From the sequence record MT811961.1: DNA of 64,000 nucleotides; one strand, 5' to 3'. Below the pieces are notes generated by a model that did not search any database, was not told the DNA's origin, and saw nothing but the letters and a program-made list of their open reading frames with translations. The stretch's first letter is position 1, and each line of letters starts with the position of its first letter. Both the position numbers and the translations under genes were made by a program. This document shows, one piece after another, positions 5,809 through 20,309 of the stretch.

Positions 5809-6780
5809 ATGAGTACGCCATTTAAAGTCGGTATCGCTTGTCAGTTTACAGAATGGCGGGATACAAAAGATGGACTCGGTACTACCTGGGTTCAACGTGC
5901 CGATACAAAGGTCGGTACAATCAAAGTCAAGTACATCAAAGACTTGCCAGAAGAAGCACAGTATGACAAGCTTTACTGTAAGTTAGTAGAGAACCTGGAT
6001 GCACTAGAAGCACAGTGCACAACAATCTGTTTGTATCCAGAAACAGCATGTATGCTGCGACTCAGTTCAGATCTATTTCCGCTAATAGACCACCCTGACT
6101 ACATGCATCTGTACGACACTGGCACTATCGATGAGTTACTAACAAAAAGACTTGCTAAGATAGGGGATCTATTTAAAGTACACAACGTACGCCTGTCAGT
6201 TCATCCGAGCCAATTCATCACGCTGTTTAGTGACAAAGATCACGTAGTGGATTCCGCGATACGTCACATAAACAAATGGATCAATATCTTTATTCTGCTT
6301 GGGTACAATCCATCCGAACATGATGTGGTCATCTGCATGCATACCAATGGACAATCATTTAAGTTTCCTGATCGAGCAAAACATCTGATTCCCTGGATTG
6401 CACTGGAGAATGACGAAAAGGCTGCTGGCTTTGACAAGACATTAAAGATCTGTCAAGACAACGGCATTCGTATGATCTTGGATGTTCACCACTATCGCTG
6501 TGAAAAGAAAGCTCATATTGGTTTAAACTCAGACGAGTTCTATGCTGTCCTAGAGACATGGAAGGACAAAGGCAGACCTAAGATGCACGTTAGTTCTCCA
6601 CGCGGCACAGAGAACTATAAAGAGCTTTGCATGCATGCTGACTTTATCTCTACAGAAGACTTGGAGCAATACTGGGAGTTTGCATACAAGTTTGACATTA
6701 TGGTAGAGGCCAAAGCAAAGTCTGTAGCAGCTGGTAAAGTTCATCGCTTTCTGTATGAAAAAATCATCGGCATAAAATAA
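5809..6780 (+). CDS. uvsE: UV DNA damage endonuclease (UvsE/UVDE family)
   Basis: Family motifs LRLSSDLFP, RLSVHPSQF, ALENDEK, LDVHHY, KMHVSS, HADFI and DIMVEAKAK. Confidence 0.92.
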   Translation: MSTPFKVGIACQFTEWRDTKDGLGTTWVQRADTKVGTIKVKYIKDLPEEAQYDKLYCKLVENLDALEAQCTTICLYPETACMLRLSSDLFPLIDHPDYMHLYDTGTIDELLTKRLAKIGDLFKVHNVRLSVHPSQFITLFSDKDHVVDSAIRHINKWINIFILLGYNPSEHDVVICMHTNGQSFKFPDRAKHLIPWIALENDEKAAGFDKTLKICQDNGIRMILDVHHYRCEKKAHIGLNSDEFYAVLETWKDKGRPKMHVSSPRGTENYKELCMHADFISTEDLEQYWEFAYKFDIMVEAKAKSVAAGKVHRFLYEKIIGIK

Positions 6781-16132: not shown

Positions 16133-16630
16133 ATGTTAGTTAAAATCTGTAAGAAGAATGGCCACGGTAGCATGAACTCTGAGTCGACTGTAAACGTCAT
16201 CGACCAAGAAGACAACTTCATTGGCGCGAACATTGCACAGCAGTGTGGCGAAGCAATTGTTTTGTTTACAATGAACGCAGATGACACAATCAACGTTTTG
16301 TATAGTTCAGACCAGTGCGAACAAAACGAGAAAGTCGTCGCAGAAAACAACGGTGTAATAACTGAAACCGGTTTAGAGAATTGGACATTCTTCCGTGACG
16401 ATGAAGGTTGCCTGCATGTTGATGATCTTTCTTTCGAAATGCCGGACTACGAGCGCATCAGTCGAGCAATTGTAAGTCACGATTTTTATGCAAGTAACGA
16501 ATGTTATGCATTGCGTGTTATTGCAGTCGACATTGTAAACGAATCAAAGCGCGATAAGTTATACATGGCCAATACAAATAGCTGGTATACTCATAACTTC
16601 TATGTTGATGGCATCCAGGTTCCAGAATAA
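16133..16630 (+). CDS. Hypothetical protein
   Basis: 165-aa ORF followed by a terminator. Confidence 0.75.
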   Translation: MLVKICKKNGHGSMNSESTVNVIDQEDNFIGANIAQQCGEAIVLFTMNADDTINVLYSSDQCEQNEKVVAENNGVITETGLENWTFFRDDEGCLHVDDLSFEMPDYERISRAIVSHDFYASNECYALRVIAVDIVNESKRDKLYMANTNSWYTHNFYVDGIQVPE

Positions 16631-16633
16631 CTA

Positions 16634-16686
16634 CCCCCCCCCCCTGCCTCCTTCGGGAGGTGGGGGTTCCTCTTTATTTTTTTTTT
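16634..16686 (+). terminator. Rho-independent terminator with a C11 run
   Basis: C11-TGCCTCC-TTCG-GGAGGTGGGGG then a T-rich tract. Confidence 0.85.
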
Positions 16687-16702
16687 CAACCAACTAGAAT
16701 CT

Positions 16703-16718: not shown

Positions 16719-16748
16719 ACTATCAATCATTGAACAAAGGTAACGACC

Positions 16749-17570
16749 ATGTTTAACAAAAAGCAAATTGTAGAAAAGGTACAAGAACTTAAAGCAAAAT
16801 TTCCTGGTATTGAACCTGTTTTATTGCATGGTACAAGTATGGTAATGCACGGCGTAAAAGAAACAACTAACGACATTGATTGTTATGTCGAAGATGTTGT
16901 TCTTGTCCTTGGTGATGCTTTGTCACGCAGAGAAGATACTTATGTGAGCAATGGCGTTACACATACAACAACCCGCTATGAAATCGGTGACTTTGATTTT
17001 GGCTTTGGTTGGAAACAAACACCAGAGGTTGTCTATATCGATGGACTTGCCGTGCAAAGTCTCGAGCAGATTGTGGAAGAAAAGAAAGTATGGGATCGTC
17101 CAAAAGACAAAGTGGCATTACAACAAATCCACGATTATTTAGTTACAGCAGAAATCGCAAAGATCGAAAATCCTTTCACTGTCATTGATTCTCTCACGTC
17201 TAAGTCAGTAGATGAAATCGGACTCGTAGAAGACGACGAGGAAGTAGAGCTGGTCGACAATCAAATCAAAGAAGAACTCATGGCTGACAGATCAGTGAAA
17301 TTTGAAAGAACTAAGCCACACGTTAATATTGGAGTAGGTAAAGTGAGAACTACACGACATTTAGATACAGCGATTACGGCATCAGTCATTGCAGAAGGTT
17401 TCGGTACAGACTGCTACCCTGAATGGCAAGCTATTGGTGGAGACTATGACGGTAACTCTACCGTAACTATTCGTCATCGCGATACAAAGCCAAAACGTTC
17501 AAAGGCAGTTATTCGCAAACAGCGTAAAGTACGCAAAGCAGCACGTAAAACAAATCGTCGAGGTAAGTAA
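16749..17570 (+). CDS. Nucleotidyltransferase-fold protein with a C-terminal EF-Tu-like peptide and basic tail
   Basis: LLHGTSMVMHGVKETTNDIDCYV fits the pol-beta-type NTase hG[GS]...DxD pattern; KFERTKPHVNIG at 17298-17333; Lys/Arg-rich C-terminus. Confidence 0.65.
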   Translation: MFNKKQIVEKVQELKAKFPGIEPVLLHGTSMVMHGVKETTNDIDCYVEDVVLVLGDALSRREDTYVSNGVTHTTTRYEIGDFDFGFGWKQTPEVVYIDGLAVQSLEQIVEEKKVWDRPKDKVALQQIHDYLVTAEIAKIENPFTVIDSLTSKSVDEIGLVEDDEEVELVDNQIKEELMADRSVKFERTKPHVNIGVGKVRTTRHLDTAITASVIAEGFGTDCYPEWQAIGGDYDGNSTVTIRHRDTKPKRSKAVIRKQRKVRKAARKTNRRGK

Positions 17571-18052
17571 TGGAAGAACTTGCAAAAACGGTCATCAAGT
17601 CGATGATCCCTTTACCAGTTTTTGATCATGCATTGTCAACAGAAACAGAATGGCTGAGCTTTCCACTGCTGCGAGGTATTTCGAAAGAAGTGCCTGAGCA
17701 TCTACAGTGGCATGCAGAAAACTCTTTTACCTTTAACTCTTTTATGGGTCACGAGGTAAAAGAAGTAAAGCTGGGCCAAAGCTACATCCATCTTGAACCT
17801 CACCTGATGGTTTATATTCGTATGGATCTGGCAGGTATTGAAGCTATCCGAGATGAACTCCCGACGATAGATCACTATCTTGCTGTTCAGATCAGTGGTG
17901 AATTTGAAGATGTGTCCGTAACAAAGTCAGAGCGGCATAACAACCGCTACATTTTGTCTGGTCATCGTCGCGATTTACGAATCAGTGATTTAAAAGGCAA
18001 GGCAAATGTTTCGTTCTCTTTCGCAGAAAACGAGTTACCACGGAGATTCTAA
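17570..18052 (+). CDS. Hypothetical protein
   Basis: 160-aa ORF with TAATG coupling. Confidence 0.75.
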   Translation: MEELAKTVIKSMIPLPVFDHALSTETEWLSFPLLRGISKEVPEHLQWHAENSFTFNSFMGHEVKEVKLGQSYIHLEPHLMVYIRMDLAGIEAIRDELPTIDHYLAVQISGEFEDVSVTKSERHNNRYILSGHRRDLRISDLKGKANVSFSFAENELPRRF

Positions 18053-18053
18053 A

Positions 18054-18428
18054 ATGGAATCCAAATTCGAATACGAGCACGGATGGATTGACTACGAGTA
18101 TATCGAATCAGACAAAACGATTGAACTCGATTTAATCATAGTTGATCGTGAACATCGACAAGAGGGCGCTGGTACAGCTCTTATGGCTGCGTTCTTCTCT
18201 TATCTCGAACATACCTATGACTTCTTTGCTGTTCGTCTTACGGTGTGTTCTGAGACGGTTTCTAATCACGAGCCTGGTCCTAGTGATCATGACTTAACAC
18301 AATGGTACGCATCATTCGGTTTTACAGTTTACGATTATGTAATCTGCAACGATCGAGAATGTGCACGCATGGTTATCCTACCTTCTGAAATGAGAGGTTA
18401 TTTGCATGGCTACAAATCTAGAGATTAA
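18054..18428 (+). CDS. GNAT-family N-acetyltransferase
   Basis: LDLIIVDREHRQEGAGTALM (acetyl-CoA-binding motif A) and LTQWYASFGF; start moved to ATG 18054 after GGAGA. Confidence 0.8.
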   Translation: MESKFEYEHGWIDYEYIESDKTIELDLIIVDREHRQEGAGTALMAAFFSYLEHTYDFFAVRLTVCSETVSNHEPGPSDHDLTQWYASFGFTVYDYVICNDRECARMVILPSEMRGYLHGYKSRD

Positions 18429-19561: not shown

Positions 19562-19860
19562 TGGGAACACGGATACTATTGTATCTGATGATGTTGATCA
19601 CGATGTCTCGTATTTTACACGAGACGTCTGTTCCTCCTTTAAAATATCGTTCGGTGTTTGTGCGCTTACCTAAGCTACCGGACCATATTGACATGCGACT
19701 CCACGACATGGAGCTTGATGTTTTGAAGTGGGAACTTGCTGACTCAGAGCATTCTCGAAAATGGGGTGTCTTGTTACGAGACATGAATCATACTGTTAAG
19801 AAAATTAAATTGTGCTTTGAACTACCGCAAGTAGATGAAGCAGGGAGATATCTATCATGA
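19561..19860 (+). CDS. Hypothetical protein
   Basis: TAATG coupling at 19559-19563. Confidence 0.6.
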   Translation: MGTRILLYLMMLITMSRILHETSVPPLKYRSVFVRLPKLPDHIDMRLHDMELDVLKWELADSEHSRKWGVLLRDMNHTVKKIKLCFELPQVDEAGRYLS

Positions 19861-20309
19861 TACCAGTTGGCAGTGTATTGGGTTCGGAGCTTTCAAACAT
19901 CCACCCACCAAAGTACTCGGTACGAAATCATCGTGCAAGTATTCTTTACAAGTGTCCACACTGTAATGGTTTCCATCTACTAGAGCGCACTGGTCAAATC
20001 CTGACGGATGACATGGGCATTAGTGGTATCTATTGGGAAGCCATGATCGGTCGTTGGTTTACTTGTGGTGATTGTAACAAGGGCATCTATCTAGAAGACG
20101 CTGTTCGTCGCAATCGTCGTAAACTGGACGATGTGGAAAAGACAGCATTGATGCGTGCTGTGATTGCTCAAGATTCTCGTGCGAAAATCTATGATGTACT
20201 CAAGCGCAATAATGCCGCAATGAATCCGGCTTCCGAGTTGCTTGTCGAACTCTATGCACAATGGCTGCCAGACGATCCTATCGCAACGAATTGTCACGGC
20301 GAACTTTAA
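19857..20309 (+). CDS. Zinc-ribbon protein
   Basis: CPHC...CGDC pairs; ATGA coupling. Confidence 0.65.
   Translation: MIPVGSVLGSELSNIHPPKYSVRNHRASILYKCPHCNGFHLLERTGQILTDDMGISGIYWEAMIGRWFTCGDCNKGIYLEDAVRRNRRKLDDVEKTALMRAVIAQDSRAKIYDVLKRNNAAMNPASELLVELYAQWLPDDPIATNCHGEL

Follow-up and report, generated by a model that had tools for sequence, protein, structure and literature searches.

A nucleotidyltransferase gene of Vibrio jumbo phage vB_pir03 with a probably tuf-derived EF-Tu N-terminal module and a basic tail

The gene and its parts

The stretch of DNA analysed here, 64,000 nucleotides (nt) long and called the window below, is part of the genome of Vibrio phage vB_pir03 (MT811961.1, 286 kb; 100% identity), a phiKZ-like jumbo phage. 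The phage is strictly lytic, encodes multisubunit RNA polymerases and has neither an integrase nor tRNA genes, and the best database match of many of its open reading frames (ORFs) is Vibrio phage BONAISHI (PMC7765460). One gene of the window, ORF 223, encodes a protein in which a nucleotidyltransferase domain is followed by an extension of 138 amino acid residues (aa), and this extension contains 12 consecutive residues identical to the N-terminal region of the bacterial elongation factor EF-Tu. In the table of the genome paper the row of ORF 223 gives, uncommented, a match to 'elongation factor Tu' in CDD (3.27e-4) and an HHpred match to 2FCL_A (99.44%) (PMC7765460). The extension is comprised of an acidic linker, the EF-Tu-like module, a middle segment and a basic helical tail. 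The gene and its parts are:

16749..17570, + strand: whole ORF, 273 aa plus stop; QNI21170.1, ORF 223, 'putative nucleotidyl transferase' (PMC7765460)
16749..17153, + strand: minimal nucleotidyltransferase domain, aa 1-135; TM1012-like, phrog_12854; homology ends at about aa 129-135
17154..17279, + strand: acidic linker, aa 136-177; net charge -10; free of homologues; two low- to medium-confidence helices in the model
17280..17408, + strand: EF-Tu-like module, aa 178-220; matches in PDB and NCBIfam, corresponding to EF-Tu residues ~5-43
17298..17333, + strand: exact 12-residue EF-Tu N-terminal peptide KFERTKPHVNIG, aa 184-195; identical to EF-Tu
17409..17468, + strand: middle segment, aa 221-240; rich in G, D, Y and N; no detectable homologue; low-confidence model
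17469..17567, + strand: basic C-terminal tail, aa 241-273; 17 K+R and 1 D+E, net charge +16

The N-terminal domain was modelled from an alignment of 29 sequences with a predicted local distance difference test score (pLDDT) of 92-98. In the Foldseek search this model matched TM1012 (2ewr, E 1.1e-4; 2fcl, E 4.9e-4; both with probability 1.00) and, further down, JHP933, ANT(2'')-Ia and MenT1, all top matches being nucleotidyltransferases. At the sequence level the domain matches the profile of phrog_12854 with E 1.5e-17 (residues 3-130 against profile positions 2-130 of 137). Its match to DUF6036 in Pfam stays below the gathering cut-off (13.3 vs 23.6 bits, E 0.073), and a sequence search of the domain against PDB found nothing. 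D42, D44, R117, K119 and D120 are invariant among the 29 sequences and G28 is nearly so; these residues belong to the RPKD motif and to the catalytic G..DxD carboxylate motif. An earlier note on this DNA had placed a nucleotidyltransferase domain upstream of the peptide, which the fold search and the conserved motifs bear out. The domain is apparently intact.

The 28 relatives of this domain are 108-186 aa long, and most of them are stand-alone proteins of 121-141 aa, such as g077 of phiR1-37, which has its own promoter and terminator, and gp104 of FLC8. None of the 28 carries the pir03 extension; the two longest bear extensions of an unrelated kind. P0005, the closest relative with 82% identity, stops at residue 135. 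Nucleotide homology of the window to the contig encoding P0005 covers 16734-17134 and then ends, and tblastn with the extension on that contig gave no match in any frame. The extension is lineage-specific, because the relatives lack it and homology to P0005 stops at residue 135.

A 5.3-kb contig (L023, Logan SRR24799356) is 80% identical in nucleotide sequence to window 16734-17134, including the 15 nt before the start codon. Apart from this gene, the phage it comes from and pir03 share one other gene of the ten on the contig (41% aa identity). The nucleotidyltransferase gene seems, from this comparison, to behave as a mobile cassette.

The full-length protein was found only in pir03 and in C-ZP2022. 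The two genes differ at 2 of 822 nt, one of the changes being synonymous and lying within the peptide, the other exchanging Thr and Ile. Diverged orthologues of the extension were absent from a word search of 5.8 billion proteins, from IMG/VR and from the JGI metagenomes, where four pattern matches are due to chance. They were also absent from an exhaustive HMMER search of 1.84 billion representatives, in which the three matches are repeat artefacts or tandem EF-Tu pieces. One protein encountered in these searches, P0002 (1425 aa), consists of about 26 tandem units of ~54 residues and reaches E 6e-53 by summing weak matches to one helix-like stretch; it shows how repeat proteins inflate whole-sequence E-values. 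Another, the metagenomic protein P0004 (276 aa), has three tandem EF-Tu N-terminal pieces, in each of which the arm peptide and the P-loop are split by an insert of ~20 residues. By its sequence it looks like a translated repeat of the tuf 5' region with an intervening sequence.

In the structural model the extension is ordered only towards its end, where residues 252-272 are predicted to form a helix (pLDDT ~87). The pLDDT of the module is below 50, and residues 183-246 are without a confident fold, from which we infer that the peptide may be exposed. A single-sequence AlphaFold model was unusable (pLDDT 35).

The EF-Tu-like module and its surroundings

The peptide lies where the earlier note had put it, KFERTKPHVNIG at 17298-17333, behind a methionine (Met178, nt 17280) from which 96 aa remain to the stop codon; the acidic linker before it and the basic tail after it also stand as described there, with the net charges listed above. 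Met178 precedes the peptide by 6 residues, about the distance at which EF-Tu's own start lies from the same residues. All 12 residues are identical to those of EF-Tu chains (e.g. 6gfu_A) and to those encoded by tuf genes taken from IMG/VR and GTDB. The chance expectation for an exact 12-mer between the six-frame translation of the window and one EF-Tu, computed with the window's own residue frequencies, is 1.2e-7.

Profile and structure databases give the same identity to the module. The PDB matches of aa 178-273 are EF-Tu in 40 cases of 40, with query residues 6-42 aligned to EF-Tu 4-41 and with E-values mostly from 5e-4 to 2e-2. Four NCBIfam models matched the same region, all of them EF-Tu models (E 3e-3 to 8e-3). 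The whole-protein cut-off for membership in the EF-Tu family (TIGR00485) is not reached (11.8-16.4 bits vs 449-522), and Pfam, GTP_EFTU (PF00009) included, gave no match to either aa 139-273 or aa 178-273. Profiles give little weight to short motifs, which accounts for the modest E-values; the calculation of chance expectation given above is what decides the matter.

The likeness to EF-Tu continues beyond the peptide. Between the module and EF-Tu residues 5-43, 20 of 38 residues are identical. When the 24 residues that follow the peptide were compared with EF-Tu in register, with a shift of at most 2 residues allowed, they scored 16-21 against three typical EF-Tus, for null means of -3 to -10 (p ~0.001-0.012). 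The same stretch gave no significant score as a free local alignment to EF-Tu. The loose echo of EF-Tu that had been noticed here is thus real in register, but weak.

The Walker A P-loop of GTPases has the form GxxxxGK[ST]. This standard pattern was used for the search and does not occur in aa 178-273, in agreement with the earlier statement that no intact P-loop follows the peptide. The alignment to EF-Tu ends at about residue 43; the remaining 53 residues match nothing, so that neither the other G motifs nor domains II and III are present. The module can have no GTPase ability, since the P-loop is destroyed and everything past helix 1 is missing.

Taken together, the exact 12-mer, the methionine at the right distance and the collinear, eroded echo of P-loop and helix 1 give good support to a derivation of the module from tuf, of which codons 1 to about 43 were copied. 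A captured tuf fragment had been one of the explanations first offered, and such an origin is probable, with good confidence.

The donor does not reveal itself at the DNA level. The exact 36-nt string that encodes the peptide occurs in 2 of 185,579 species representatives, in the tuf genes of Tepidibacter formicigenes and [Eubacterium] yurii, both low-GC Clostridia; no Vibrio genome has an identical 36-mer. Identity over the string is 35-36 of 36 and drops at once to background on either side. A clostridial tuf gene was rejected as the donor and its match put down to codon coincidence, since the flanks are at background identity.

The codons of the module are unusual for the phage. The GC content of the 36-mer is 0.31, compared with 0.405 for the gene. 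The peptide uses both Arg-AGA and Gly-GGA, which in the other genes of the window make up 7% of Arg and 11% of Gly codons, respectively. The Arg codons at residues 181, 187 and 200 are AGA and that at residue 203 is CGA, all within 23 codons (window 17286-17360); among the other Arg codons of the gene 11 of 13 are CGT or CGC. The AGA codons are not simply inherited from tuf, because two of them sit at positions where EF-Tu has no Arg. The odd codons and the low GC content hint at a foreign, incompletely ameliorated origin of the whole module.

This composition, with AGA as three of the four Arg codons and GC of 0.31 in the 36-mer, also fits a simpler history. In that history a 5' piece of tuf arrived by illegitimate recombination, fell in frame by luck, is still intact because it is recent, and has no function. 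The presence of the extension in only two near-identical genomes and the modest significance of the echo after the peptide fit it as well. Several observations speak against it, however. There is no plausible donor among sequenced genomes, the 36-mer being found in two Clostridia species only and with flanks at background, and AGA is also used where EF-Tu has no Arg. The reading frame of the extension is open over all its 138 codons, and translation of the following gene is coupled to it. The layout of the module recurs in four other phage groups, described below, in one of which constraint on the peptide has been measured. A functionless relic of this kind is a possibility to be kept in mind, though on balance an unlikely one.

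Two further DNA features were considered and set aside. A direct repeat of 16 nt that matches at 13 positions (17119-17134 and 17546-17561) brackets the extension almost exactly and was examined as an insertion scar. Its copies lie in different reading frames and have unrelated flanks, chance alone would yield about 11 such seed pairs, and the repeat itself is probably a chance occurrence. A sigma-70-like match within the DNA of the peptide (17302-17330) is at chance level, with 14 such matches found in the region and 21.9 expected.

The elements that directly flank the gene are:

16641..16674, + strand: intrinsic-terminator-like hairpin of 11 pairs (8 G-C) followed by a T-run, ~75 nt 5' of the gene
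17570..18052, + strand: downstream gene, 160 aa, function unknown; GAGGT Shine-Dalgarno word; translationally coupled

The hairpin terminates the preceding transcription unit. It belongs to an unusually homopolymer-rich intergenic element (16634-16690), in which at least 9 C's run straight into the hairpin and about 10 T's follow it. On the 3' side, the stop codon of ORF 223 overlaps the ATG of the downstream gene (TAATG). No Rfam family was matched, and the window has no tRNA gene. The divergence between pir03 and C-ZP2022 is ~8% over 3 kb and must therefore lie mostly outside ORF 223, where only the two differences given above occur.

Some of the neighbouring genes are annotated differently in the two phages. 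The upstream gene (window 16133-16630) encodes 165 aa in pir03 and, as annotated, 88 aa in C-ZP2022 (L001, 3124-3390). Two genes downstream, at 18006-18428, lies a small GNAT acetyltransferase (Acetyltransf_1, 21.4 bits, cut-off 20.7) with a weak match to the PADLOC model PDC-S07; its start overlaps the preceding gene by 47 nt in pir03, and its annotation in C-ZP2022 is 48 nt shorter. A protein weakly resembling Lar-like zinc-ribbon proteins, called 'MqsA-like' in the genome paper, is encoded at 19857-20306.

Mini-proteins that begin like EF-Tu

Short proteins that begin like EF-Tu were found in other phages by tblastn and follow-up searches. In all of them the EF-Tu-like methionine is the start codon of a stand-alone ORF of 59-133 aa. 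Outside the FLC9-like family described next, the likeness to EF-Tu extends over 20-55 residues, and the last 30 residues contain 7-14 K+R. The P-loop is degenerate in these mini-proteins and intact only in ORF27 of Aaphi23. EF-Tu-start modules are rare, with about 14 among 50,697 records, 9 of which are Vibrio phages from four unrelated groups.

When IMG/VR was scanned for DNA that can be translated into residues 1-10 of the peptide, 15 contigs came up, ten of which carry an ordinary tuf gene, either full-length or cut by the contig end. Four others encode a protein of 104-107 aa that consists of the first ~18 residues of EF-Tu followed by unrelated sequence ending in a basic tail, and in one of the four the mini-protein gene and a gene for chimallin (E 1e-54) are 1.4 kb apart. 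Homologues of this protein are gp386 of the Burkholderia jumbo phage FLC9 (61% identical) and the products of three further contigs of 172-315 kb. Counted as a family, gp386 of FLC9 and the proteins of six IMG/VR contigs of up to 315 kb are encoded close to a chimallin gene. The chimallin of FLC9 is 80% identical to that of contig L005, and a chimallin-like match was obtained for BONAISHI, too.

Codons were compared within the FLC9-like family. At the 16 codons of the peptide, synonymous differences were seen in 34% of the pairs and amino acid differences in only 10%. The corresponding figures are 27% and 50% for the adjacent stretch, and 27% and 22% for the C-terminal half. The peptide of this family is under purifying selection at the protein level, because amino acid changes (10%) are so much rarer in it than synonymous ones (34%); no other part of the protein is as constrained. 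Whether the peptide is kept while its flanks drift had been proposed as a check; it holds for the proteins like FLC9 gp386, and in pir03 the only orthologue differs by the two nucleotides already mentioned.

The remaining mini-proteins are of several kinds. ORFs of 59 aa occur in the Vibrio phages henriette 12B8 (VPDG_00052), 2.058.O (NVP2058O_086) and 3.058.O, and one of this henriette type is automatically annotated as 'elongation factor Tu GTP binding domain protein'. ORFs of 126-133 aa occur in the Vibrio Ackermannviridae 207E48.1 (p0029), 1.244.A (NVP1244A_125) and 1.255.O. The 59-aa ORFs of Aaphi23 (ORF27) and S1249 form phrog_27465, whose function is unknown according to PHROGs, and the other mini-proteins score against this family with E 6e-46 to 6e-6.

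In aa 178-273 of the pir03 protein the same parts follow in the same order: the peptide at residues 7-18, no P-loop, and a basic tail with 16 K+R in the last 30 residues. This layout is common to pir03 and seven other proteins in four phage groups, and overall it recurs in at least four unrelated groups other than that of pir03. The class so described, an EF-Tu N-terminus with a lost P-loop and a basic tail in ~60-130 residues, is defined here and is not a curated family; that it is a recurrent one is probable. By sequence, pir03 has the layout in common with the mini-proteins, but no family membership can be demonstrated. A BLASTP comparison of pir03 with the FLC9-like proteins aligned 13 residues only. 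Motifs that by eye suggested homology between the pir03 tail and the FLC9-like tails were not supported by hhalign. A conserved two-gene module was also considered, since the genes downstream of the EF-Tu-like sequence encode ~160 aa in pir03, henriette and FLC9, and was dismissed because these products are not homologous by BLASTP.

The mini-proteins bear on the suggestion of the earlier note that translation may also begin inside ORF 223. A start at Met178, in addition to or instead of the first start, would release a free 96-aa mimic of the EF-Tu N-terminus. The parallel in architecture stands: in every other example the EF-Tu-like methionine opens an ORF of its own, 59-133 aa long, and both the length of 96 aa and the layout conform to this. 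A purine run, AAGAAG, is present at -11 to -6 of Met178. The translation signal argues against it. In scans with the textbook consensus, the sequence before nt 17280 contained no Shine-Dalgarno word of at least 4 nt. Its pairing with the anti-Shine-Dalgarno sequence reaches -1.8 kcal/mol, the same as the median for 372 internal ATGs, and 96% of 73 gene starts pair more strongly. There is also no stop codon between the domains, so that the 273-aa fusion must be made. A second, free product is accordingly rather improbable.

Another proposal of the earlier note, that the peptide is a decoy for a defence system or modifying enzyme acting on EF-Tu, fares worse. EftM, Lit and the type IV Thoeris protease were considered as such opponents. 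The proposal has some points in its favour: K184 aligns with EF-Tu residue 5 (in numbering that includes the initiator Met), EftM is widely conserved in Vibrio (PMC6401129), Vibrio phages account for 9 of the ~14 phage records that bear the module, and EF-Tu is known as a target or partner of defence systems (PMC13581612). The individual candidates do not fit, however. The protease of type IV Thoeris is promiscuous and cleaves EF-Tu beyond the retained part, after R45 and R59 (10.1101/2024.10.24.620036); the binding sites of Avs7 are domains II and III of EF-Tu (PMC13581612). Lit is cited only as another EF-Tu-cleaving system (PMC13581612). Methylation by EftM is reported to have no impact on the canonical translation function of EF-Tu, which makes a benefit to the phage unclear, and the henriette-type mini-proteins have no Lys matching EF-Tu Lys5. 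Neither the protein nor its neighbours match a PADLOC model, save for the weak match of the GNAT protein. With the Thoeris sites outside the module, Avs7 bound elsewhere on EF-Tu and the Lys missing from a whole type of mini-protein, a dedicated decoy is improbable.

The IMG/VR scan also returned a phage-like contig (L010, IMGVR_UViG_3300031124_000455, 6.1 kb, GC 0.66) that ends in tuf codons 2-19 (~6060-6140). The tuf codons run into 8 unrelated codons, a stop codon and a hairpin, followed by ORFs that look like those of phage structural proteins. The contig may be a prophage-tuf junction that arose by integration inside the tuf 5' end. Junctions of phage-like DNA with a tuf 5' fragment therefore exist, and the pir03 module might similarly be the remnant of an attachment site left by site-specific integration into tuf. 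This is very hard to reconcile with a phage that is reported to be strictly lytic and without an integrase (PMC7765460), and with a fragment that lies in frame inside a gene, in a window without tRNA genes. Neither an integrase nor a pir03-like prophage integrated in tuf was found, and an origin of this kind is the least credible of those considered.

Interpretation and comparison with known systems

The best overall explanation is that ORF 223 encodes a nucleotidyltransferase fused to a tuf-derived mimic of the EF-Tu N-terminal arm with a basic tail; a probability of about one half is given to it. Few bacterial peptides are as conserved as the N-terminal arm of EF-Tu, which serves plants as a signature of pathogens and whose own role is poorly defined. 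In the lineage of pir03 and C-ZP2022 the TM1012-like domain (aa 1-135) would have gained the 138-residue extension by capture of the 5' end of a tuf gene. The P-loop would then have been lost, and 12 residues of the conserved arm and the beginning of strand 1 would have been kept letter-perfect. The peptide of pir03 may have been kept by selection, as an exposed linear mimic of the EF-Tu arm. The basic tail would anchor the module to RNA, either tRNA or the ribosome, and the module would carry the attached nucleotidyltransferase to a host partner that reads the EF-Tu arm. The origin of the module from tuf and the recurrence of its layout are the firmer parts of this explanation; the mechanism of mimicry and targeting in pir03 is put forward tentatively, as one possibility.

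A wider form of the same idea may be considered. Several unrelated phage groups may repeatedly have exapted the first 20-45 codons of tuf to make small basic arm mimics that engage a conserved host partner, and pir03 would have added a nucleotidyltransferase to such a mimic. The groups concerned would be phiKZ-like jumbo phages of Vibrio and Burkholderia, Vibrio Ackermannviridae, ~100-kb Vibrio phages and a temperate Aggregatibacter phage. The candidate partner would be an aminoacyl-tRNA, a ribosomal site or a yet-unknown reader or modifier of the arm. Repeated exaptation of this kind is conceivable but doubtful at present.

A number of points weigh against these interpretations. The link between pir03 and the mini-proteins is confined to the peptide: hhalign aligns only 14 residues of pir03 and the FLC9-like proteins and gives 0.2% without the peptide, and the match of pir03 to phrog_27465 covers residues 7-21 only and is not significant (E 0.055, 14.3 bits). 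The common layout may thus be a coincidence or a product of convergence. The mini-proteins all carry the peptide at a free N-terminus, and pir03 has it inside a longer chain. None of the proteins in the class has been assigned a function, and the analysis turned up no partner of the EF-Tu arm. The echo that follows the peptide scores only 1 (not significant) against a fourth, divergent EF-Tu (L008), and its significance elsewhere is modest. The sole orthologue, in C-ZP2022, differs at too few positions to reveal selection on the pir03 peptide. The cluster of AGA codons and the low GC content could mean that the insert is fairly recent, which would weaken the contrast between a perfect peptide and eroded neighbours. 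The low pLDDT of the module may merely reflect the lack of aligned sequences.

If tuf has indeed been exapted repeatedly in this way, the resulting proteins would form a new class of host-mimicking phage proteins and offer a handle on the strict conservation of the EF-Tu arm. That the arm is preserved under selection in small basic phage proteins, and in pir03 is joined to an enzyme, would point to phages making use of whatever reads it. For pir03 itself, which has been proposed for phage therapy in aquaculture, the module bears no resemblance to a toxin or virulence factor.

The module can be compared, first of all, with EF-Tu. Residues 184-195 of the pir03 protein equal EF-Tu residues ~5-16, a weak collinear likeness extends to residue ~43, and the methionine is similarly placed. 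Unlike EF-Tu, the module lacks the P-loop, the other G motifs and domains II and III, and in the phage protein it is flanked by an acidic linker and a basic tail. The elf18 epitope overlaps the pir03 peptide. The domain in front of the module, aa 1-135, has its fold and the G..DxD motif in common with the TM1012-like or DUF6036-like proteins (2EWR, 2FCL); among the TM1012-like proteins found, only those of pir03 and C-ZP2022 carry an EF-Tu-like extension.

The mini-proteins of Aaphi23, henriette 12B8, 2.058.O, 207E48.1 and 1.244.A resemble the pir03 module in their EF-Tu start, degenerate P-loop (intact in Aaphi23) and basic tail. They differ in being stand-alone, whereas the pir03 module lies in frame behind a domain and has the most eroded P-loop region of all; the tails cannot be aligned. 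The proteins like FLC9 gp386 come, like pir03, from phiKZ-like phages, are of similar length (102-107 aa vs the 96 aa of pir03), have the peptide at their start and end in a basic tail. In contrast to pir03, their likeness to EF-Tu ends at about residue 18-25, and they are stand-alone, some with strong ribosome-binding sites. ORFs of this kind have received such automated labels as 'EF-Tu GTP binding domain protein' and 'P-loop NTPase', to which the CDD match in the pir03 table can be added; ORFs that merely start like EF-Tu should not be annotated as GTPases.

In the searchable literature the peptide string occurs only in papers on elf18 and EFR in plant immunity, and no paper there discusses phage ORFs with an EF-Tu start. 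The recurrent class of an EF-Tu start plus a basic tail is apparently undescribed so far. Fragments of translation factors carried by phages are already known, and the nearest discussed precedent is the truncated EF-Ts of Caulobacter phage Colossus, gp247, a 98-aa fragment whose function is only conjectured (PMC3556154). As in pir03, a conserved N-proximal subdomain of a host factor has been kept in gp247 and the rest lost; the factor is a different one, and the fragment is neither fused to an enzyme domain nor reported to have a basic tail.

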